This document shows, piece after piece, positions 8,686 through 42,572 of a DNA stretch of 64,000 nucleotides. Where the stretch lies: NCBI GenBank assembly GCA_002189035.1, contig CM007991.1, forward strand, positions 3,348,001 to 3,412,000, written 5' to 3'. This stretch comes from Utricularia gibba. Lineage: Eukaryota > Plantae > Magnoliophyta. The number at the start of each line of letters is the position of its first letter. Position 1 is the stretch's first letter. The translations under genes were made by a program, and so were the position numbers. The notes beneath the pieces are model-generated. The model had not been told where the DNA came from and did not search any database. It was given only the letters and a program-made list of their open reading frames with translations.

Positions 8686-9954
8686 TCACATGATGGAGCA
8701 GCCATTGGGATTCTCATCACTGAAGTAGTAGTCGCATCTGCTGCGTCGCTCTCGGATTGGGACTGGGACCTTCTCGGACGCATATCCATAGTCATACACG
8801 TACCCTTCGTATTGGGGCTGCGGCGGATCCGGAGCCCCGAAACCGTACCCGTGAGTGCACGGGCCGCCCCCGTATCCGTTGTAGCATTCCATGCAGCAGT
8901 TTCTCCTGTCCGGACCCCAGGAGCCGAAACCTTGATAACATGGGCCTCCGCCGTGTCCGTGATAGCACTCGGTGCAGCATGTTCCCCATGGTCTCGGGTA
9001 CCCGCTTACGAAATCCGGATATGGGTATGGATCCGGATCGGGATCCTTCTCTGGTTTTTCAACTACCACAACCGGGGGTGGTTCAGGGTCCTTGGGTGGC
9101 TCGACCACCACGACCACAGGTTCAGGATCCCTTTCAGGTTCAATAACCACAACTGGGGAGGTTCAGGGTCCTTGGGTGGCTTGAACACCACGACCACCGG
9201 TTCAGGCTCCTTTGGCGGTTCAGGAACCATCACAACAACTTGAGGCTCAGGCTCGTTGGGTGGCTCGGGAACCACCACCACAACTGGCGCCTCCGGCTCC
9301 TGGGGTGGTTCTAGAATCACCTCCGCAACCGGTGGCTCCGGCTCTGGTTCAGACTCTTCCTGTGGCTCCGGAACAACCAAGATAACCGGAGGTTCAGGCT
9401 CTTGCGGTGGCTCGGGAACCACAACAACAACCGGTGGTTCAGGCTCCTTGGGTGGTTCCACTATGACCACCTTCTTTTTTGGCTTTTTAGGCTCCGGTTC
9501 AGGATCTTTGATCAGAATGCTCTTGATGACATTAGAACCTTTGCAACACAATTTATCTCGAATTCCCTCAGGATCGCAGCAGAAAACGGAGATGGTAATC
9601 GTGTTCGCCTTTTCATCGAACACCTGGTCTCTGATTTCTTTCGTCCACAACACATTTTTTCAACAGGAAAGAAAAAAAGAGAACCAACCTCAGTCGACTC
9701 CAATCAAAATAACTCTCCCTTCAAGAACAGGGGATCACGCACCACCCCCATAACTATACACAGAAGCAGAGAAGAAACTCACGGGGAAATCTGCTGAGGA
9801 TCTTCTTAACCTTCTTGTAGCATGTAACGCACTGGAGATCAACCTTGAGAACCATCGTCGTCATCCTCTGAAACCACAATTAAAAAAAAATCACCCTCTG
9901 ATTGACTGAAAAACAAAAAACCAAGAATCATGTCACAGCTACCTTGTACGCCAT
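8686..9954 (-). CDS. Heavy-metal-associated isoprenylated plant protein (HIPP / Pi21-like) with long PEPP-VVVV repeat tract
   Basis: Exons 9954-9943 (MAYK), 9867-9783 (VLKVDLQCVTCYKKVKKIL, CxxC) and 9637-8686 (VFCCDPE, KLCCKG, Pro/Glu/Val repeats, CaaX terminus DENPNGCSIM). One apparent -1 frameshift at G-run 9155-9158. Confidence 0.82.
9060..9480 (-). repeat. Coding tandem repeats (about 39-48 nt units, EPPKEPEPPVVVVV-type) in the HIPP gene
   Basis: Roughly ten degenerate units such as ggttcaggctcc/ggttcagggtcc ... accacaac, visible directly and in translation. Confidence 0.85.
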
Positions 9955-23901: not shown

Positions 23902-25695
23902 ATGGGCGGTGGAGGAGGGTCGTGGAGGTGCAAAAGGGTAGCCAGAAAGCTGTTTTTGAGAACTTGTGCCTCCTTCTGCCGAGACCCTGCGGCTGGGGCC
24001 ATTGCCATTGCCGTAAGCTCCTTATGGATTTCTGCTTCTGGTTGTGTGAATTTTGTGTGATCTCAGATGCATTGTGGTTCTTTCACAGGAAAGTCGAAAG
24101 AGGGACGTTTCTTGCCCGAAGAATCCATTAGAGATTTCTGGGTCAGCCAATCCGACTATCAGTCCTGCTAATAAGGTATCCTTTCGTCAATTTTCTTACT
24201 TCGGGTGTATGGATACGGCCTGCATTTCTCGGATTTCGTATAATCTCTTGAATTGAAGCGAGTTGTGGCTTTTTGGGCTCTACTTTGTCTTTGTTGTGTG
24301 GGATGGATGAAGCTGAGATTGGCTTACTTTGTTCTTTGTGTGGTTTTTCTTCAGAGCTTGTGTACAATATGTCTGGATCCTCTGAACTACGGCTCCGGTG
24401 GGAGCCCCGGGCAGGCGATATTCACTGCGCAATGTTCGCATGCCTTCCATTTTGGCTGCATTTCATCCAATGTCCAGCACGGCAGCATAACTTGCCCCAT
24501 TTGTCGCGCCGAATGGACTCAGCTACCCCGCAATCTCCGCTTCCGTGGCTGCGCTCCTTCTGTTAAAGCTGATCCTGTTCTTCAGATCCTTGATGACTCC
24601 ATTGCCAATTCCCGGCTACACAGACGGTCATTCCTTCATTCAGCTCGCTATGATGATGATGATCCAATTGACTCTGATCAGATTAGTGCTCAGCCTCGTC
24701 TGCAATTCTCTCTCACCCCCGCTTGGAGTCACCATACCTGCTGCCTGAGTTTTGACTCCAGAGAGGGCTCAGGCCATTGTTCTGGCTCTTCTTCTAGAGC
24801 CGGATCGCCTCTTGCTGTAAAGGATTTTTGGGGCGAGGCATTTCATTGTTCTCCTAGCAACGTCGCTTATCTTCATGTCAAACTTGGTTATCGGCCCCCT
24901 GTCGATCTAGTTCTGGTCGCTTGTCCTGATGGACCACATCTCCGAATGATGAAGCAAGCAATGGCATTAGCTGTTTTCTCCCTTGAGCCAGGGGACCGTC
25001 TGGCCATTGTAACTCACTCTTCTTCTGCTGCCAGGATCTTCCCTCTCCGACGAATGACTCCACTGGGAAAGAAAACCGCGCTGCAAGTCATCGATCGCTT
25101 GTTCTATTGCGGACAAGCCGATCCATCTGAAGGGCTACAGAAAGGAGTGAAGATTCTCACCGATCGACTCCACATGAACTCCCAGTCCTGCATTCTGCAC
25201 CTGACAAACAGCTCAACCAGATCCTACCACCTTCCCGCCGTCGCAATGGTGGATGGTCAGATCAGCGTGCACCGGTTCCACCTCGCAGCATCCGGTTTCG
25301 GAGCTTCCATGGGACTCACTATGCATGAATTCGAGGAGTCTCTGAGGCAAATGCTGAGTGGCGCCATCCGAGACATTCAATTAAGGATCGAAGAAAGCTG
25401 TCGGATAATTCAAATTACAGAGCTGAGGGGTGGCGAGGAGCAGCAGATCCCGATTCACGGACACGAATCCTCCTGGCCTCTACATGTCTCGTACAGCTAC
25501 GTGGACCCTGCAGACGGCGGACGTATCAGGATGGGCAAAACCGAGGTGGGTTTCGAGGTCAAGGGCGAGGAGGGGATCGAGAATGCCGACGTTGCGACTG
25601 TGACCGGAAGGATGAGCTCCGGCGAGAACTGGGACTACTACGATCCCTTCATGGCCAGAAGATGGGCTAAGCATTTGCATGGACATCGACTGTAG
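23902..25695 (+). CDS. RING-H2 E3 ligase with degenerate vWA domain (WAV3/WAVH-related)
   Basis: Exons 23902-24012, 24089-24175, 24355-25695. CTICLDPL...GQAIFTAQCSHAFHFGCI...CPICRAEW. The vWA-like region DLVLVACPDGPHL lacks DxSxS. C-terminus DPFMARRWAKHLHG. Confidence 0.82.
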
Positions 25696-26103
25696 AATCT
25701 AGTGTTTGTGCCCAAATTTCACACATATTTGAGTTGCAGGGCACTGTTTTCTTGGTGGCTGGTTTGAAATGAAACAAACTCTTCATCCATTGAACTTGAA
25801 CAAATATGCTATCGGCATTGAAATCATGGAAAACGAGGAATGGAGTTGATACAAAATGATTATAATGAGACAATGGAAAGCGAGGAGTGGAGTTGTTTGC
25901 ACATATTTATGCATGGTAGCAGAGTTTGTTTATAGTTTTCAAGTGCATCAAAGATGAATAAAGAGCTGATTCCATTTCAAATCATTAGCAGACCACACAA
26001 CACACATTGCGGTCTTCTCTTATTGCAACAACTGAAGTACACAAATGCATCACGAGCAGGAGACGAAATAACTTAAAAACTCCCGCCAGTTCTTGCGTTC
26101 AGC

Positions 26104-26430
26104 TCATCGGTTGGCGACCTCAAAGGGGGCGGAGGGAGAGCGAGGACGACCGGAGTTGGGGTAGACCACCTCAAATGGAGCCGAGGGAGAGCGAGGACGG
26201 CCGGAGTTGGGGTGGACCACCTCAAATGGAGCCGAGGGAGAGCGAGGACGGCCGGAGTTGGGGTGGACCACCTCAAATGGAGCTGAGGGAGAGCGAGGAC
26301 GGCCGGAGTTGGGGTGGACCACCTCAAAGGGAGCTGAGGGAGAGCGAGGACGGGTGGAATAACCAGGAGAAACGAAGAGGGCGACAACTAGGAGAAAGGC
26401 AAGAAATGCGAGTGCTCCTCTGGAAGCCAT
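26104..26430 (-). CDS. Family A copy 1: secreted multi-repeat peptide precursor, 108 aa
   Basis: Intact ORF. 25-aa hydrophobic signal peptide ending GYS, four RPRSPSAPFEVV(H/Y)PNSG units and a terminal RPRSPSAPFEVANR. TATAAAT at 26490-26484, 60 nt upstream of the ATG. Confidence 0.85.
   Translation of the reverse strand: MASRGALAFLAFLLVVALFVSPGYSTRPRSPSAPFEVVHPNSGRPRSPSAPFEVVHPNSGRPRSPSAPFEVVHPNSGRPRSPSAPFEVVYPNSGRPRSPSAPFEVANR
26107..26352 (-). repeat. 51-nt coding tandem repeat (4.8 units)
   Basis: Near-identical units gagagcgaggacggccggagttggggtggaccacctcaaatggagc(c/t)gagg on the + strand. Confidence 0.95.
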
Positions 26431-27616
26431 ATTCAGAATCTAGTAGTTATGGTTTTGCATGGATTGGAGTAGAATCGATGGCCATTTATAGGATGACACC
26501 ATGTCCAAATTCGTTGTACAAAAAATGGCCGATCAGAGGGAAGTCTACGCAGGGGGCGGACGGCTACCAGACGTTTCGATCTTCACACACATTCGAGAAC
26601 GTGCGAAGAAAAGTCCAAGTGCCCGCTGCCTCGTCACCCATGAGCAATATACATAATTTTTTTCTATATTGTTAGATAAATTAAACTAAAAACTAGATAA
26701 ATTAGGCTAATATAAAGTCCAATTAAACCAATGAGAAATATTTTAAACCTTGTTTGATTTTATTTTTTAATTATCACAATTTGAAAAATATTGTATTAAA
26801 ATTAAATGATGCATGAAGTCATCATTTACTTAAGTGATCTCTTTAAGGACCGAATGCTCCCGAGGCAATGCATATAATCGTATCGAAAACTCCAAATTTT
26901 ACGTCATTTCATCATACTCGTATGTTTTGAAAAAAAAATTGCATTGACATCAAAATGGGATTCCCGAACCGCGTCCTACTGATCATTTATTAAGATACTA
27001 AATACTGGATAAATTGGGTTAATATATAGTCCGATTAAAGCACTGGGGAGGGTAAAAGAAAGACAAGTTTCACATGCCGCGGGAGCCTTATGCTTTCCTT
27101 TCCCGGCGGTTATTAGAAAGAAAGAATTGTGCACATGTTTTGGAATACAAAAAAATAAGTATTTAATAATTAATGTGTGAGTTTGTGGGTCCCATCCCCG
27201 ATTCAGTGAACCGTAGTCATTGGAAAAAAGAATTGAAAAAGAAGCATGGTGGGCGGTGAGAGAATGCCGACGTCCGTCCATCAAACTCCTGGGTGTATTC
27301 CTCGGTCCCAATCCCATAAAAAGAAATGGCGGCTGGAAATGGAATAATTTCTTCACGTTTATTGGGGTTGATTTTTTTTAAAAAAAATTCTGAATGCGTT
27401 GGAGCAGTTGGGGTTTCTGCGTGAGGTTGCAATGGGGATGGATTTGTACCTTGGATTCACAACGCAGAAGTCGCGCGAAAGTGCCCCCGCTGGCTGCACA
27501 GCACATACGGGATGGTTTCTTTATTTGAAAGGGAGTAAAAACAGGCAACATAAGTAGAGGATAGAAGAGCTCCGACGCCTGCCGGATCGGCCCTCAGGTT
27601 TCAGCTCCAGCCTCCG

Positions 27617-28080
27617 TCAGTTGTTGATGTCGCTGCCGGGATGCCCGGGGCGCTTAGCTTGGCCGACGCCATGGCTGATTCTGCCGAGGATGGTGGCCTC
27701 CTCACCTTTTTTCACTGACTCAAAGCAACAATATCGCCAATAAGAAGAAATCCATGATACATCGGCAAAAAAGGAAAGCCATAGCCTTCATTGTATCACC
27801 ATGCTCAACCAAGCCGGGATGCCCGGGGCGCTTAGCTTGGCCGACGCCATGGCTGATTCTCCCAAGCTCGGCGGTCTCTTCACCCTTTTTCACTAAAAAA
27901 ACGTATCATTAAAATTAACACCGCAAACCATTGGTTAAATACCCCCCATAACCAAAACTACTGGTTACATGCATCCATGGAGTTGAGGTCAAAGCCCTCC
28001 GCAGTGTCTCTACCAGCAGCAACTTCAAGAGAAACCAGGAGAGCAGCAACTAGGAGAAAGGCGACTACTTTGGAAGCCAT
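27617..28080 (-). CDS. Family B copy 1: secreted 100-aa precursor with GRP-like signal peptide and a tandemly duplicated exon
   Basis: Exons 28080-27969, 27892-27800, 27714-27617 (phase-1 GT-AG introns) give MASKVVAFLLVAALLVSLEVAAGRDTAEGFDLNSMDAL-KKGEETAELGRISHGVGQAKRPGHPGLVEHV-KKGEEATILGRISHGVGQAKRPGHPGSDINN*. TATAAG at 28133-28128. Missed by the ORF track because it is spliced. Confidence 0.72.
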
Positions 28081-29843
28081 ATCTGTATCTTAAAGCTTGT
28101 GTGGATTTGAGAGGACTCCCGCAGGCTCTTATAGATACGAGACCCTAAACAGTAGCATTTGAAGATACAGAACCATGTCACCATTTGAATGAACCAATGG
28201 AATGGATCCCACAGCTGCTAAAGGAACCGTCCAGATACACAGATGAGCTGACAACACTCCAACCCTCTCGCTCTTAGGTTGGATCGCCCACTAGCCGGGA
28301 GAAGCTGGATTCAGCTTAAGATCAACACCTGTCCCGATTTCCAGATCGCTAAACACCTGTCCATGTTTTCGGATATGGACGATAAATCAGCATACTATTT
28401 GCTATTTCGGTTTTTGTTGTTCGCTGTAGTTGATGAGATCTCCCAAGTTGGATCCACGCAAAGCCGCCCACGAAAATTATTGCATGTTGCCAAAACGGAC
28501 GGTGGCGTGAGAGGATTTCGGATGAGTGATAAAAATGATCATTCTAAATAAAATAATACGAGATTTCATAATTTTCCAAAATAAAATTGTTTTATTTTAT
28601 CATAATTTATCGTTATGTTTTTATTTAACAATATCTTTTTGTAGGCGTTGCACTCAACTTTTTTTATAATCATCTTCATTATAAAAATATTTACAAATAA
28701 TTTTTTTTTCTAAATTAAACGAATATCAACAAAATCATCATAGTTATTTTCAATTATTTTATACTACAAAGAATAGTAATTCCATCTTTATCTTTAATGG
28801 ATCCAATATATTGATGAATTCAAAATTATTTCCCAAGAGTTTATTTTTATTCATTTAAAAAAGAGAAAAAGAAAGAATAGTACATCAACTTTAAAAACCG
28901 AATTAATAAAAATAAATTATCCTTCAGCATGGAAATTCGAATGGGCTTGGTTGGGATATTTTGGGCAGGACTAGATTGAGGTTTTGGGCTCGATAGTGTT
29001 GGGCCTTGCTAGATGGGCTGGAAGAAGCCCGGCAAGCGGCCGAGGCATCGATGGGGCGCCGACAGGGATGGCCGGGGAAGCTCCACCGGTGGACAGGCTC
29101 CGGTGTAGATACAGTGGCGGTAACGCAGCGACGGAGGATCGGGTGACGATCGAGAAGTCAACAGCGGAGGGCGGCGCGGCGGGGGAGAGCTCAGGCGACG
29201 GTATCAATGGGAGTAAACTTGTGTTTTTAAATATAATTGAGGATTTTCAAGGCAATCTTCTCCAATTCGAATTCCAACACTATCTCGGCATCGAAATCAG
29301 AAACGCAAGGATGATGGCGAAATATTTAAATTTAATGTGGATAATAATACAGATAATAATGACGTAAAAATGAGGATGAATATTATGTGGAGGATAGAGA
29401 CTGTATTGAAAAATATTTAAATTTAAAATAAAAAAATTATGTATTGATAGATAAATTTTTGGAGTATTTTTTTTTTAATTCCATAGGGGTTCCATCTTGA
29501 AATCATACAGTTTTGATTACAGAATCTCGAAATGGAAAGGGTTATATGGTTTTGGTTCCAACTACGAGTTTGATTCGAATTGATCGAATAATTAATTTGG
29601 AATAAATTGTATTTATTAACTTTATTTACATTTTGAAATATGCTAAAAATTCTTTAAATTTTAAAATATTTAAAACACAACTGAAGATGGGATTCCATTT
29701 GAGATCACGTGGCAGACCAGACGACGCACATAAACACACTGTCGTCTTCCCTTGTTATTCCAGCAACTGAATTATGCAGCAGCAGCAGCAGCAGTAGACG
29801 AGACGATATAACTTGAAAACTCCACCGGTTCTTGGGGTTCAGC

Positions 29844-30203
29844 TCATGGGTTGGCGACCTCATGGGGAGCGGAGGGGGAACGGGGACGGTTGTTGGGGTA
29901 GATCACCTCATGGGGAGCGGAGGGAGAGCGAGGACGGAGGTTGGGGAGGATCACCTCATGGGGAGCGGAGGGAGAGCGAGGACGGAGGTTGGGGAGGATC
30001 AGCTCATGGGGAGCGGAGGGGAACGGGGACGGTTGTTGGGGTAGATCACCTCATGGGGAGCGGAGGGGAACGGGGACGGTTGTTGGGTAGATCACCTCAT
30101 GGGGAGCGGAGGGGGAACGGGGACGGTTGGAATAACCAGGAGAAATGAGGAGGGCGATGAGTAGGAGAAAGGCAGCGCAGGCGAGTGCTCCTCTGGAAGC
30201 CAT
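29844..30203 (-). CDS. Family A copy 2: secreted precursor with six 16-aa units (120 aa if three G-run contractions are corrected)
   Basis: ATG 30203, signal MASRGALACAAFLLLIALLISPGYS, units RPRSPSAPHE(V/L)I(Y/L)PN(N/L), terminal RPRSPSAPHEVANP*. As written, three G-runs (30085-87, 30065-68, 30018-21) are one base shorter than in sister units, giving an early stop. TATA retained at 30265-30258. Confidence 0.72.
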
Positions 30204-30740
30204 CTTCACACTCCCTCCACTAGTTAAGCAGCTTCAATGGAATGGAATGGAGGGGCCTTTTTATAGAGGGATGGCATGTCCAAGTTCATTGTATCAAAAT
30301 GGGGGATCGGAGAAAAGTCTACGCAGGCGGGCTGACGATGACGAGACGTTTCACTCGTCATACACTTCTGAGCACATGTGGCTGGAGATAAGAGGCAAAG
30401 GCCAAGCCCCGCTGCCGGATGTTCATAATTGCTGCAATCATTCATCGCTGCTGTGCTTTATCTAGAAACCTTACCTCCAAAAATTTCACACATGATCACG
30501 TTTCTAAATCTCAGACAAGTTATTTATGAGGTCTAAAACAATATTAGACCAGTTAAATTGGGTTAAGATGTTGTCGAATTGAAGCAGTGGGGAGGGTCCA
30601 AGAACGGTAAGTTTCACATGGCGCCGCAAATCTCAACTTTCCTTTCCCGGCGGTTGATCTCATGTTTCCGGGTATAAGAAGTGATTGATTAATTAATTAA
30701 TGCGTGCGGGGCCCACACGAGACAGTGGACCCGAGTCACG

Positions 30741-30810
30741 GGAAGGAGAAAAAAAAAGAAGCTGTGGAAACGTCGGGAAGGAGAAAAAAAAAGAAGCTGT
30801 GGAAAGGTCG
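30741..30810. repeat. 35-bp direct tandem duplication in the 3' region of family B copy 2
   Basis: ggaaggagaaaaaaaaagaagctgtggaaa(c/g)gtcg at 30741 and 30776. Confidence 0.85.
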
Positions 30811-31059
30811 CTGGAAATGGAATAATTTCTTCCCGTTTATTTGGGTTGATATTTCCTTGATTTTTTTTTCTAAATTCCGAATGCGTTGGAGCAGTTGGGG
30901 TTTCTGCGTGAGGTTGAGGACTGGTTGCATTGGGGAAATGCACAGCAGATACGGGTTGGTTTCTTTATTTGAAAGGGAGTAAAACAGGCAACATAAATAG
31001 TGGATAGAAAAGCTCCGACGCCTTCTGGATCGGCTCTCTGGTTTCAGCTCCACCCTCCG

Positions 31060-31717
31060 TCAGTTGCTGATGTCGCTGCCGGGATGCCCGGGGCGCTTAG
31101 CTTGGCCGACGCCACGGCTGATGGTGGCCTCCTCACCCTTTTTCACTAAAAAAAAAGGGGGTATCATTAAAATAAATATACGATGATAGCACTTGTTGAT
31201 GTGTGTGTTTTTGGTGATGCTGAGCATAAAACGAATGATGTATAGCCTTTTGTTCTTGGTATTGAGAAGATCTTTGATTGAAAACAGGCTCCTATTTTTT
31301 AAGTTGATTACAGGTATTTATACAGTCAGATTTACAACGGCAGCCTATACACTAGGAATTAACCGTTGTGGTTGCTGTAGACATCAAGCTTAGGGCCTTG
31401 GATAATCATGTGACTTGGTTGCTGGATCAACCTTGAGAGCCCATTTACTTGATTTTCGGTCCAATATGATAATTCCAAGTTCGTGTTGTACTCTTTTCTT
31501 CCTCTTGCCTCCTCCCGTCGTTTTCCTCATTTCAGCATCCGATTTTTCAGAGTTTCTTTCAGAATGCTGCTGACTCACCTTTTGTTCATCCTTAACCATC
31601 ATCATACGACACCAATGTCCAAATACCCTCATGTATAGAATGATAAAACAAAACTACTGGTTGCATTCATCCACGGAGTTGGGAAATAAGGAAAAAGGCG
31701 ACTACTTTGGAAGCAAT
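31060..31717 (-). pseudogene. Family B copy 2, pseudogene
   Basis: The last exon 31145-31060 is intact (KKGEEATISRGVGQAKRPGHPGSDISN*). The start codon is ATT (31717), exon 1 is internally deleted, the donor has changed GT>GC (31664), and the intron carries an insertion of about 430 bp. Confidence 0.75.
31194..31630 (-). mobile_element. Insertion in the B2 intron, possible LTR remnant
   Basis: Absent from the homologous B1 intron. On the minus strand it has a GTATAAATAC TATA-like motif (31323-31314) and ends ...ATCAACA (31194), as Copia-type LTRs often do. No target-site duplication found. Confidence 0.35.
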
Positions 31718-32569
31718 CTCATCCCACCAATTTCATGCATGCCAAAGAACGATTATGTACTAGTAAAAACTAATGGTTGATGATGAATCAATTTTAAGCA
31801 ATCTCATCCGACCTGCCATGAACTCAGAGCTGCTGCTGGAACACATCGCGTGCAATGAGGAAGAGGGAAGAAGCCGTGAGATGAAGACATAAAATCAATG
31901 GGTTAAAATATTGGGCCTGCGATGCATGGGTTTGCAACAATAAGCCCGAAGGCCAAACCTATGTCTAAAGAGCAACCCAAACCAGACCGGCCCGACTACT
32001 GAACAACAATAACCTGCAACACTAATGCAAATCTATATCCTAGTTCCCACACCCGGTGCGCAAGTGTGGGGAATTTGCTGCACATTCGTTGTACGGTGAG
32101 TTTTTTTTTTTTTTAAAAAAACTATTTAATCAAATTCCAACTCATTCACTTGATTTTTCATATTTTAGTTCATATTCATCAATCGATTATTCAATCATCA
32201 TCATCATCATCCACCATTTAAATTACGATGATCATCATTTATAGATTATCGTTTTAATTTTCATTTGTTTTTTTTAATATTGATTTTTTTATTTGAAATT
32301 TATATTTCTAGATTTATGAATTTGATGCTATGATATCTTTAAATTGTTAATTATTTAATTCTAATCTATTTATGTTTACTTATTATTTGATCATGATTAT
32401 ATAAATATATTTTGTTTTTGGTAACAATGACATAAATAATGTATGAAAATTTATTTTCAAAATGCACATACTCCATACAATATATTTTTCATTAATTTTT
32501 TAGTTAAAAATTATTTTAATTTAGTATTTTTTTTAAAAAATAATAATAATATAACTTAAATATAATATT

Positions 32570-32955
32570 ATAGGAAGGAAGGGATGGAATAATTCCAGGT
32601 GGTATAATACAATTTTATCCTTCTTTAATATTATATTACGATCTTCATGATTTTTTTCACCTCATTTTCGATAATTCCCATTCTTTCAAATAATTATTCC
32701 TTCTACAACCTTCTTTACTATTTGTTCAAATAAATTGATATTCGATGCGTATTTTGAAAAAGATGTATGTTTTCAATCATGATTTATTTAAAAGAATATG
32801 ATAATCCAACGCATTTTATACCATATTTTTTACTTATCAAACTAAATATGATATTTAAAATGCTTTTTTTATTTAATTATATCCATTTTCTATCTAATAT
32901 TCTTATTAAAATATTTCTTGGTATATCAAATTTTCCTAAAACAAATACACCCTAA
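32570..32955. mobile_element. Possible degenerate Tourist/PIF-type MITE remnant
   Basis: AT-rich stretch ending caaatacaccc+taa (32942-32955), resembling a Tourist TIR plus TAA target. The partner TIR was not found. Confidence 0.25.
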
Positions 32956-33175
32956 GTGTATTTATATATTTTTACTATATTACTAATAACGTCAAGTGTA
33001 TGAAAGATGAATAAAAGAGCTGAACTGATTTTATTTCAAATCATGTGGCAGACCACACACACAACACAGACATTGTGGTCTTTCCTTCTTATTCCAACGA
33101 CAACTGAACTGCAAATGCAGAACGAGAAGCAGCACACAAAATAACTTGAAAACCCCACCAGTTCTTGGGTTCAGC

Positions 33176-33385
33176 TCATGGGTCAGCGACCTCAAAGGCG
33201 GCGGAGGGAGAGCGAGGACGGCCGGAGTTGGGGTAGGCAACTGAGTGAGATGGAGGGCGGCCGGCATTTGGGTAGACTAACTCACGGGGAAAGGATGGGG
33301 AAGGAGGGCGGGAATAACTAGGAGAAATGAGGAGGGCGACAAGCAGGAGAAAGGCAGCAAAGGCGAGTACTCCTCTGGAAGCCAT
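33176..33385 (-). CDS. Family A copy 3: secreted precursor, 69 aa, three divergent units
   Basis: Intact ORF MASRGVLAFAAFLLLVALLISPSYS-RPPSPSFPRELVYPNAG-RPPSHSVAYPNSG-RPRSPSAAFEVADP*. TATAAAT at 33445-33439, 60 nt upstream. Confidence 0.82.
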   Translation of the reverse strand: MASRGVLAFAAFLLLVALLISPSYSRPPSPSFPRELVYPNAGRPPSHSVAYPNSGRPRSPSAAFEVADP

Positions 33386-33639
33386 CTTCAGAATCTACTA
33401 GTTAAGCTTTTGCATGGATTGGAGTAAAATCGGTGGCCATTTATAGGATGACACCATGTCAAATTCATACTATCAAAAATGGCCGATCAGAGGGAAAGTC
33501 TACACAGGCGGGCGGGCGGGCGGCTACACATTCCAGCACGGCAGCACGTGAGATGAAATATCCAAGGCCCGCTTAGCCAAACTCAGTTAAAATGGAAAAA
33601 AAAAAAAGGTTTCTGACATAGTTGCTTTGAGCATTTCTC

Positions 33640-33935
33640 GTCAGTGAAAAGGCGGCTGGGAATGGATTAGTTTCTCCCTCACGTTTATTCCCGTTGATGC
33701 TTTCTTGAAGTTTTGTTTTTAATTTGGAATGAATTGGAGCAGGCGGCGTTTCTGCGTGAGGTTTGAGGACTGGTTGCAATGGGGATGGAATGTACTTTGG
33801 ATTCAGATCGCACAAGTACCTCCCTGACTTGACTGCCCACACCGGGTGGTTTCTTTATCTGAAAGGGATAAAAAACAGGCAATAGAAGTAGTGGATAGAA
33901 GAGCTCCGACGCAGCCCGCAGATTTAGCTCGCTGT
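33640..33935 (-). other. Orphan 3' region of a third family B copy (coding exons absent)
   Basis: Matches the B1/B2 downstream sequence (ggcggctgg.aatgga, ttggagcag, tttctgcgtgaggtt, ggatagaagagctccgacgc). Homology stops before the B stop codon. Confidence 0.7.
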
Positions 33936-41379: not shown

Positions 41380-42572
41380 ATGGGACAGATGACGCTGCCG
41401 CCGGGGTTCCGGTTCCATCCGACTGACGAGGAGCTTGTTGCGTACTACCTCTACCGTAAAGTCACTGGCCGGAAAATTGAAATTGACGTGATCCCGGAGG
41501 TTGATCTCTACAAATGCGAACCCTGGGACTTGCCAGGTACGTGAAGACTGGTTGTTGATCCCAGTTCACGGGTTTCAAGGAGTTTGTCAATTCTGGTTTT
41601 ACGTTTTCCGGTAGATAAATCTTTCTTGCCGAGCAAGGATTTGGAATGGTACTTTTACAGTCCCCGAGATCGGAAGTACCCGAACGGCTCGCGAACAAAT
41701 CGGGCGACGAGGTCTGGTTATTGGAAAGCCACCGGAAAAGATCGGGCCGTTGAGTCGGGGAAACGGACAGTGGGGATGAAGAAAACTCTGGTTTACTATC
41801 GCGGGAGAGCACCCAACGGAATCCGTACAGATTGGGTTATGCACGAGTACCGCCTCGCCGCCGATTCTCCTTCCGTCCGTTTCCTCTTTTTTTCCTCCCC
41901 GAATTTTATCATCTGCTCGATTTCAATACTCTGACTTCCGATTTCGATTCAGGATTCGTACGCTCTGTGCCGCGTTTTTAAGAAAAACATAGCGATGACC
42001 AATGACGTAGAAGCCAGCGCCGCCGCAGTAAAAATCACCGAAACTACACCCACCACCACGCCGGAGATGAGTGCCAGTAACTTCTCCCTGGAATCGCCTT
42101 TCACCCAGGTGAAAATCTACCTAAATTTCACCATCCCGGTCCCAGGAATGATCCCGGTTTGGATTTTCTCCCTTCCACAACATGATTCTCGTTTCATCTT
42201 TCCGTAAAGCTTCTGGGGCCCATCCGCTTTCTCCTTCTCCTTCTCCTTCTTCTTTGCGACTCTCGATGACTTCTTTTGACTGCCTAAATTCTCGCCATTT
42301 CTCCTTCTCCTTCTCCTTCTTCTTTGCGACTCTCGATGACTTCTTTTGACTGCCTAAATTCTCTTTCCGCCATATTTCTGCAATATTTTCTTTCCCGCTT
42401 TTTTCAATAAAAGAATAAACACAAATTTAATCTTTTTTTAATTTTAAAATTCTTGCAGGATCGGTACGAGACGGTGACGACGGTGGAGGAGTTTCCACTA
42501 GTAGAGTATGAAAATATAGGGTTGGAGGAGATATTTTCCCTTCCTCCTTCCCACGAATTCTTCTTACATTGA
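41380..42572 (+). CDS. NAC transcription factor, NAC020/045/086 clade, about 228 aa
   Basis: Exons 41380-41536, 41615-41874, 41953-42108, 42459-42572. [54 protein letters not shown]. Confidence 0.85.
42231..42363. repeat. 70-bp-period direct duplication (63 bp identical) in NAC intron 3
   Basis: 42231-42293 is identical to 42301-42363. Confidence 0.95.

Follow-up and report, generated by a model that had tools for sequence, protein, structure and literature searches.

What do three small, related genes on one strand of the Utricularia gibba genome make, when their predicted products consist of a signal peptide followed by copies of a single proline-rich unit? The genes, A1, A2 and A3 (together family A), lie in a 64,000-nucleotide stretch of contig CM007991.1 (assembly GCA_002189035.1, positions 3,348,001 to 3,412,000), which was analysed as a whole and is called the window; all positions below are counted from its first letter. 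An earlier note on this DNA, made from the letters alone, had described three paralogues of an unrecognised family of secreted peptide precursors, and the open reading frame (ORF) listing and translation bear out the three paralogues, all on the minus strand:

26104..26430, minus strand: A1 coding sequence, 108 aa, intact ORF
29844..30203, minus strand: A2 coding sequence, same plan as A1, frame broken in the window sequence
33176..33385, minus strand: A3 coding sequence, 69 aa, intact ORF

The likeliest reading of the family A genes is that they encode secreted-peptide precursors. We put the probability at roughly 0.4 that the encoded protein is a polyprotein that would be cut after an invariant Asn into hydroxyproline-modified peptides of 15–17 residues.

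The A1 protein consists, in order, of a 25-residue signal peptide ending in PGYS, a Thr, four 17-residue units and a truncated unit ending in ANR; its full unit reads RPRSPSAPFEVV[H/Y]PN followed by an SG linker. A2 has the signal peptide, an Asn, five 16-residue units (RPRSPSAPHE[V/L]I[Y/L]PN plus a linker of N or L) and a truncated unit ending in ANP, and A3 carries an N-terminus like that of A1 followed by three degenerate units, RPPSPSFPRELVYPN, RPPSHSVAYPN and RPRSPSAAFEVADP. The earlier note had counted five, six and three copies; the numbers stand, but the last copy is truncated in each gene and A3 is degenerate, so that A1 has four full units and one truncated, A2 five full and one truncated, and A3 one full, one internally deleted and one truncated. 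Its description of a signal followed by tandem units only is confirmed by this layout, which has no spacers. The consensus core comprises 15 residues, R-P-R-S-P-S-A-P-x-E-phi-phi-x-P-N, with one or two variable linker residues between cores, and the length differences between paralogues are confined to this linker (SG, AG, N or L), which lies between the invariant Asn and Arg-Pro. The C-termini, ...FEVANR in A1, ...HEVANP in A2 and ...FEVADP in A3, all end in N/D-x. The first unit begins one residue past the predicted signal cleavage site, and directly at the site in A3, which fixes the register of the unit. Tandem Repeats Finder gave the A1 array a score of 418 with a period of 51 and the A2 array a score of 412 with a period of 48, and tblastn within the 64-kb window found no copy besides the three.

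The conserved 25-residue signal peptide ending in (G/S)YS, another element of the earlier description, was supported by two kinds of analysis. Residues 6–20 are hydrophobic, with mean Kyte-Doolittle values of 3.15–3.23, and AlphaFold, run on the single sequence, places a helix at residues 3–20 and leaves everything downstream disordered (predicted local distance difference test score about 50), with no fold past the signal helix. In the A1 ending ...P-G-Y-S the −3 residue is Gly and the −1 residue is Ser; sequence and model together give the N-terminal signal and the small residues at −3/−1 that mark secreted proteins. The TATA boxes are also where the earlier description had them, 60–62 nt upstream:

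26485..26490, minus strand: A1 TATA box, TATAAA, starting at −60 from the ATG
30260..30265, minus strand: A2 TATA box, TATAAA, starting at −62 from the ATG
33440..33445, minus strand: A3 TATA box, TATAAA, starting at −60 from the ATG

A2 and A3 have the start codon context GAAGATGGC, with an A at −3, and A1 has GAATATGGC; position +4 is a G in each of the three genes. The A genes are intronless and TATA-driven and are predicted to encode pre-proproteins that enter the secretory pathway.

To assess selection on the unit, A1 units were set against A2 units by the Nei-Gojobori method, nine units in all. The two halves of the unit behave differently. Over the nine units, five codons vary in the RPRSPSAP half and all five changes are synonymous (proportion of synonymous differences, pS, 0.41; proportion of nonsynonymous differences, pN, 0.00), while the xEVVxPN half lacks synonymous changes and has replacements at positions 9 and 11–13 only (pN 0.25), leaving Glu10, Pro14 and Asn15 invariant. 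In the signal peptide pN is about equal to pS, as in near-neutral evolution, and within A1 the units differ from one another mainly by synonymous changes and by one His/Tyr replacement. Because change in the RPRSPSAP half is synonymous only, this pattern shows that the frame is translated, with purifying selection on the exact residues of the first half-unit and not on its composition alone.

We next describe the transcripts. RNA runs X6 and X7 gave A1 contigs from about 26000 to 26458, where the end at about 26458 is the 5′ end, and the A2 transcript is placed as follows:

29592..30235, minus strand: A2 transcript, 5′ end at about 30235, poly(A) at about 29644 or 29592

The A2 poly(A) tail appears as long plus-strand T-runs at the 3′ ends of the minus-strand mRNA contigs. 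For both genes the RNA 5′ end lies 25–30 nt downstream of the TATA box, and contigs of run X10 extend over the repeat arrays of both. RNA depth over A2 is in the hundreds to thousands; the ~3 kb between A1 and A2 has zero depth in the RNA runs, except for a gene of a second family, B (see below), in X10, and DNA runs cover the A1–A2 interval evenly. A1 and A2 are transcribed, and the A2 transcript is polyadenylated and very abundant; a lack of transcripts, which the earlier note had named as a ground for abandoning its proposal, is not what these runs contain. A search for words from A2 matched 16 RNA-type runs of several studies, among them runs under six other organism labels (shares 0.06–0.43), and close relatives therefore seem to have near-identical A2 sequence in their RNA runs. 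RNA contigs for A3 are found only at 33204–33236 and all continue into A1-type sequence, so transcription of A3 is not demonstrated; the degeneracy of its units had escaped the earlier note.

The window sequence does not contain A2 as the intact coding sequence that had been assumed. Each of units 1–3 measures 47 nt and not 48, a single C being missing from one C-run per unit (30085–30087, 30065–68 and 30018–21); these three shortfalls bring a stop after residue 50. In DNA runs X1, X2 and X4, which share the same organism label, one more G stands behind 30064 and another behind 30084; RNA run X10 has the one behind 30064. Two of the shortfalls are absent from independent reads and look like assembly errors. 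The third run, at 30018–30021, is covered by none of the contigs listed, and the X10 contig spanning 30018–30087 is clipped exactly at its edge, which fits one more missing base without proving it. Restoring all three bases would make A2 an unbroken frame for a 120-aa protein of five full units and a truncated one, and restoring just two would leave a stop in unit 3. DNA runs X1, X2 and X4 also add a single G/C at 26551, 27195, 30251 and 31864. Single G/C insertions thus occur at six places, each at full depth, and the window assembly therefore seems to under-call G/C homopolymers. Two substitutions were also seen: other accessions have Phe for Cys at A2 residue 9 (30177–30178), in agreement with A1 and A3, and a C>G change at 26108 in RNA runs X6 and X7 turns the terminal Arg of A1 into Pro.

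To place the family we searched for relatives at several levels. Neither A1 nor A3 matched a Pfam family (E≤1), and no related family turned up for the C-terminal piece of A2 (E≤10). A word index of 5.8 billion proteins contained no homologue, whether queried with A1 or with a four-row profile built from A1, A3 and two in-frame A2 pieces. An exhaustive phmmer search of 1.84 billion representative proteins gave 17 matches at E≤0.001, none of them a self-match. The matches inspected (P0001, P0003, P0005, P0006, P0009, P0011, P0014, P0015 and P0017) are unrelated proteins of similar repeat period and were set aside as repeat-on-repeat artefacts. The missing self-match means that the family A gene is not in public protein sets, and an exact-sequence look-up found neither A1 nor A3 on record. 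A metagenome contig scan matched 600 patterns and confirmed no relative, and a literature search with four 8-residue strings of the unit found no paper. In a feature-atlas search the nearest entries were plant hypothetical proteins and, among multi-copy peptide precursors, CEP9, CLE and apidaecin; the scores, 0.67–0.76, are weak, and we treat them as a lead only. The family thus stays as unrecognised as it had first seemed, although short-read contigs shatter on the repeat, which limits what 'no homologue' can mean here and probably explains the lack of a gene model. We rate family A as a new family within a known architectural class, expressed and under selection.

In its workings family A appears most like a HypSys- or apidaecin-style polyprotein, while belonging to neither family. 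HypSys precursors hold 2–6 peptide copies with contiguous Pro runs (PPS/SPPP) and spacers, and take part in defence-type amplification. Those of Solanaceae and Convolvulaceae resemble family A in having a signal followed by 2–6 Pro/Ser/Arg-rich peptides of 15–20 residues in one small precursor. They differ in their contiguous Pro and their spacers: mature A1 has zero Pro-Pro, zero SPPP and no spacers, and there is no sequence similarity between the two. The HypSys family is listed in PMC11756074. Multi-domain CLE, CEP and PIP precursors and the other ligands of subfamily XI leucine-rich repeat receptor kinases (IDA, RGF, CIF) share with family A a Pro-containing core of 12–21 residues ending in Asn or His. 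The PSAP stretch of family A resembles IDA, and its P-F-x-x-x-P-N echoes the CIF C-terminus. Family A lacks the Asp-Tyr motif, PGxSPGxGH and the [KR]-H-N end, and its spacer-less units, unlike those of CLE/CEP-type precursors, fill the entire mature protein. No CLE motif of the R-x-V-P-x-G-P-N-P-L-H-N type (Pfam CLE_plant) is present, and Pfam gives no related match for A1, A3 or the A2 piece; the D-Y dipeptide of RGF/GLV and CIF peptides is absent from A1, A2 and A3, with no Pfam GLV1-2 match; and of the single C-terminal IDA/IDL motif, of PIPPSAPSKRHN type and ending in [KR]-H-N, only PSAP and H-P-N are shared. SCOOP peptides, at the C-terminus of PROSCOOP precursors, have an S-x-S core, and S-P-S occurs in every unit of family A; three residues are too few to be diagnostic, and the protein searches gave no homologue.

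How might such a protein work? The precursor would enter the endoplasmic reticulum, where signal peptidase would cut after (G/S)YS and leave an intrinsically disordered chain of 15-residue cores. Prolyl 4-hydroxylases could then modify the Ser-Pro and Ala-Pro prolines, and an Asn-specific protease of the legumain or vacuolar processing enzyme type, or a subtilase, may cut after the invariant Asn. The linker would be trimmed back until trimming halts at the aminopeptidase-resistant N-terminal Arg-Pro bond, so that each mRNA would yield many (hydroxy)proline peptides of 15–17 residues with a C-terminal Asn. Once released, the peptides may act extracellularly as a signal or defence elicitor, with the paralogue-specific residues at positions 9 and 11–13 tuning specificity. 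We favour this model because the unit register starts at the signal cleavage site, because all length variation falls between the invariant Asn and Arg-Pro, because all three proteins end in N/D-x and because exact residues are conserved.

Several observations weigh against the polyprotein reading. The Asn at which the units would be cut is a candidate P1 residue only, and the spacer or pro-domain that separates units in plant multi-copy precursors is absent, which is unusual. Transcripts as abundant as these are found more typically for structural or defence proteins than for hormones, and the A3 copy is decaying. Because concerted evolution homogenises units within one gene, the only informative comparison is A1 versus A2, about 15 codons. 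Finally, the SP/AP dipeptides and a Pro+Ala+Ser+Thr (PAST) content of 48% fit an uncut arabinogalactan-type glycoprotein equally well.

That last point leads to the main rival, which we consider somewhat less likely than the polyprotein and which the earlier note had named as a ground for abandoning its proposal: that the family encodes uncut hydroxyproline-rich secreted glycoproteins, small arabinogalactan-like or hybrid proline-rich proteins of wall or exudate without a glycosylphosphatidylinositol (GPI) anchor, in which the SPSAP stretch would bear arabinogalactan and the short hydrophobic xEVVxPN stretch would mediate interactions. By the Hyp-contiguity rule, non-contiguous [AST]-Pro favours arabinogalactan addition, and the 83 residues of mature A1 contain 10 [ASTGV]-Pro dipeptides and no contiguous Pro. 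In being small, secreted and disordered, with clustered non-contiguous SP/AP and a PAST fraction of 0.48 in A1 and 0.52 in A3 (arabinogalactan proteins have about 45–50% or more), family A resembles arabinogalactan peptides and other small arabinogalactan proteins; the lack of spacers, the wholly disordered mature chain and the very high transcript depth are also in keeping with such a protein. Yet Ser4, Ser6 and Ala7 are kept exactly despite saturated synonymous change, although glycomodules usually tolerate S/A/T swaps, and the strict 15-residue period with hydrophobic, acidic and Asn positions under selection sets family A apart from arabinogalactan proteins. There is no hydrophobic C-terminal tail, and hence no GPI signal, in A1, A2 or A3; at just 69–120 aa the proteins have no Lys/Tyr-rich proline-rich protein or extensin motif (mature A1 has no SPPP, no Lys and one Tyr, with a PVKY fraction of 0.35); and the invariant Asn at unit ends and the N/D-x terminus would be left without a role. 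Of the traits that define the known peptide and wall-protein families compared, family A shares only the composition of arabinogalactan proteins. As far as glycosylation goes, the polyprotein and the glycoprotein models are not mutually exclusive. It is improbable, in our view, that A1–A3 are a young, fast-turnover orphan repeat gene without specific function or a transcribed minisatellite with an incidental ORF. The absence of relatives and the decay of A3 would suit such an origin, as would the way the repeats hold several frames open on both strands, but one frame only has a well-placed ATG, a signal peptide and a conserved stop, the first half-unit shows a 5:0 synonymous excess, the frame is kept across 3, 5 and 6 units, and abundant transcripts appear under several organism labels.

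The division of the unit into conserved and variable parts also brings to mind a precursor of ribosomally synthesized and post-translationally modified peptides (RiPPs), in which RPRSPSAP and PN would be recognition flanks and the variable stretch of 5–7 residues (FEVVH, HEVIY, HELIL) the core, possibly cyclised. Asparaginyl endopeptidase (AEP) ligases use Asn as the P1 residue, which matches the Asn at the core end, and prefer a small P1′ and a hydrophobic P2′, which the residues past the Asn (S-G, N-R, L-R) do not match. In flax linusorb precursors a signal sequence is followed by tandem repeats in which variable cores lie between conserved D(−2), [DAG](−1), [FVI](+1), G(+2) and K(+3), and this logic of conserved flanks bracketing a variable stretch is paralleled in family A (PMC9308333). 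None of these five flank positions, including the D at −2 and the [FVI]-G-K at +1 to +3, is found in the family A units, however, and the 'variable' part is just four positions around a fixed Glu, judged from two informative paralogues, with no cyclic product known; we give a RiPP-type precursor only a slim chance. Excision of P|FEVVHP| by a prolyl oligopeptidase was considered and rejected as the main model, since the amatoxin- or segetalin-type enzymes are cytosolic and the precursor has a signal peptide. The antimicrobial option raised in the earlier note, here a polyprotein of proline-rich peptides of the apidaecin or drosocin type, is weakened by charge and strikes us as very unlikely. 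Apidaecin precursors carry multi-copy Arg/Pro peptides with dipeptidyl (EAEP-type) spacers, and antimicrobial peptides of the proline-rich class have a strong positive charge and contain several PRP triplets. Insect apidaecin polyproteins and family A share head-to-tail Arg/Pro copies after one signal and gene copies that vary in unit number, and the Arg-Pro-Arg motif and high expression would fit; the apidaecin cluster in the feature atlas scored 0.68, which is under any meaningful threshold. The two come from different kingdoms without homology, family A has no EAEP-type spacers, and in place of strong positive charge and PRP/RPP triplets each 15-residue unit has a near-neutral net charge of just +1 with an internal Glu.

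The family A genes are embedded in a larger duplicated arrangement that contains family B:

25939..33912, strand not assigned: tandem triplication of three cassettes, 70–81% DNA identity
25939–27918, cassette 1; 29691–31176, cassette 2; 32992–33912, cassette 3
27617..28080, minus strand: family B gene, three exons, in cassette 1

Family B is complete in cassette 1 only, and cassettes 2 and 3 hold B fragments. Its payload is encoded by two duplicated exons, each one module of 31–32 residues (VKKGEE..GRISHGVGQAKRPGHPG..), and neither module has a Pfam match. The gene has a TATA-like box about 60 nt upstream of the ATG and is transcribed and spliced: run X10 contains an RNA joint at 27714/27800 across intron 2, which has minus-strand GT..AG ends. 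The first exon, encoding the signal peptide, aligns in DNA with the 5′ ends of the A genes save for a 12-nt indel, and A and B therefore represent a common signal-peptide module with different payloads. Within cassette 2, a B-like exon-3 remnant at 31060–31227 on the minus strand (..VKKGEEATISRGVGQAKRPGHPGSDISN*) has no B-type first exon nearby and is probably what is left of a gene. One contig of DNA run X4 omits 426 bp at 31177–31604, as well as 36 and 88 bp near a 35-bp tandem duplication at 30739–30810; these skips are structural polymorphisms inside cassette 2.

Other features of the window lie outside the triplication. Just upstream of the A/B cluster, an intact single-exon gene for a RING-vWA (WAV3/EDA40-like) E3 ligase occupies 24253–25695 on the plus strand; its top database matches are Lamiales proteins of only 60–65% identity, a divergence that suggests a fast-evolving lineage. 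A proline-rich repeat gene at 8686–9653 on the minus strand, with PEPPKEPEP and VVVVV units and Tandem Repeats Finder periods of 39–80, has a Cys/Gly/Tyr-rich tail ending in CSIM that resembles a CaaX prenylation box and may be HIPP-like. At 42228–42363 a 70-nt sequence with TTCTCC microsatellite runs is duplicated in tandem without mismatch (1.9 copies, 100% match).

Taken at its widest, a proposal we regard as doubtful, family A would be an undescribed class of plant extracellular ligands or RiPP-like products made in mass from spacer-less polyproteins, with the invariant, hydroxyproline-bearing RPRSPSAP half as a processing or binding handle and the diversifying half with its C-terminal Asn as the seat of specificity; it would be restricted to one Lamiales lineage and cassette-paired with a gene B that shares its signal-peptide exon. 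Short-read assemblers break on the family A repeats and long-read homopolymer errors break the frame, and further apparent frameshifts in the Utricularia gibba assembly may likewise be artefacts. Should the units not be released, the interest of family A would be merely local, as a small and unusual repeat protein of the arabinogalactan-like kind. If they are released, the locus would offer a natural experiment, with paralogues that differ at just four core positions and a decaying copy, A3, and family A would be a rare plant case of a spacer-less peptide polyprotein and a new family of plant peptides, wholly missed by standard annotation and by protein databases.

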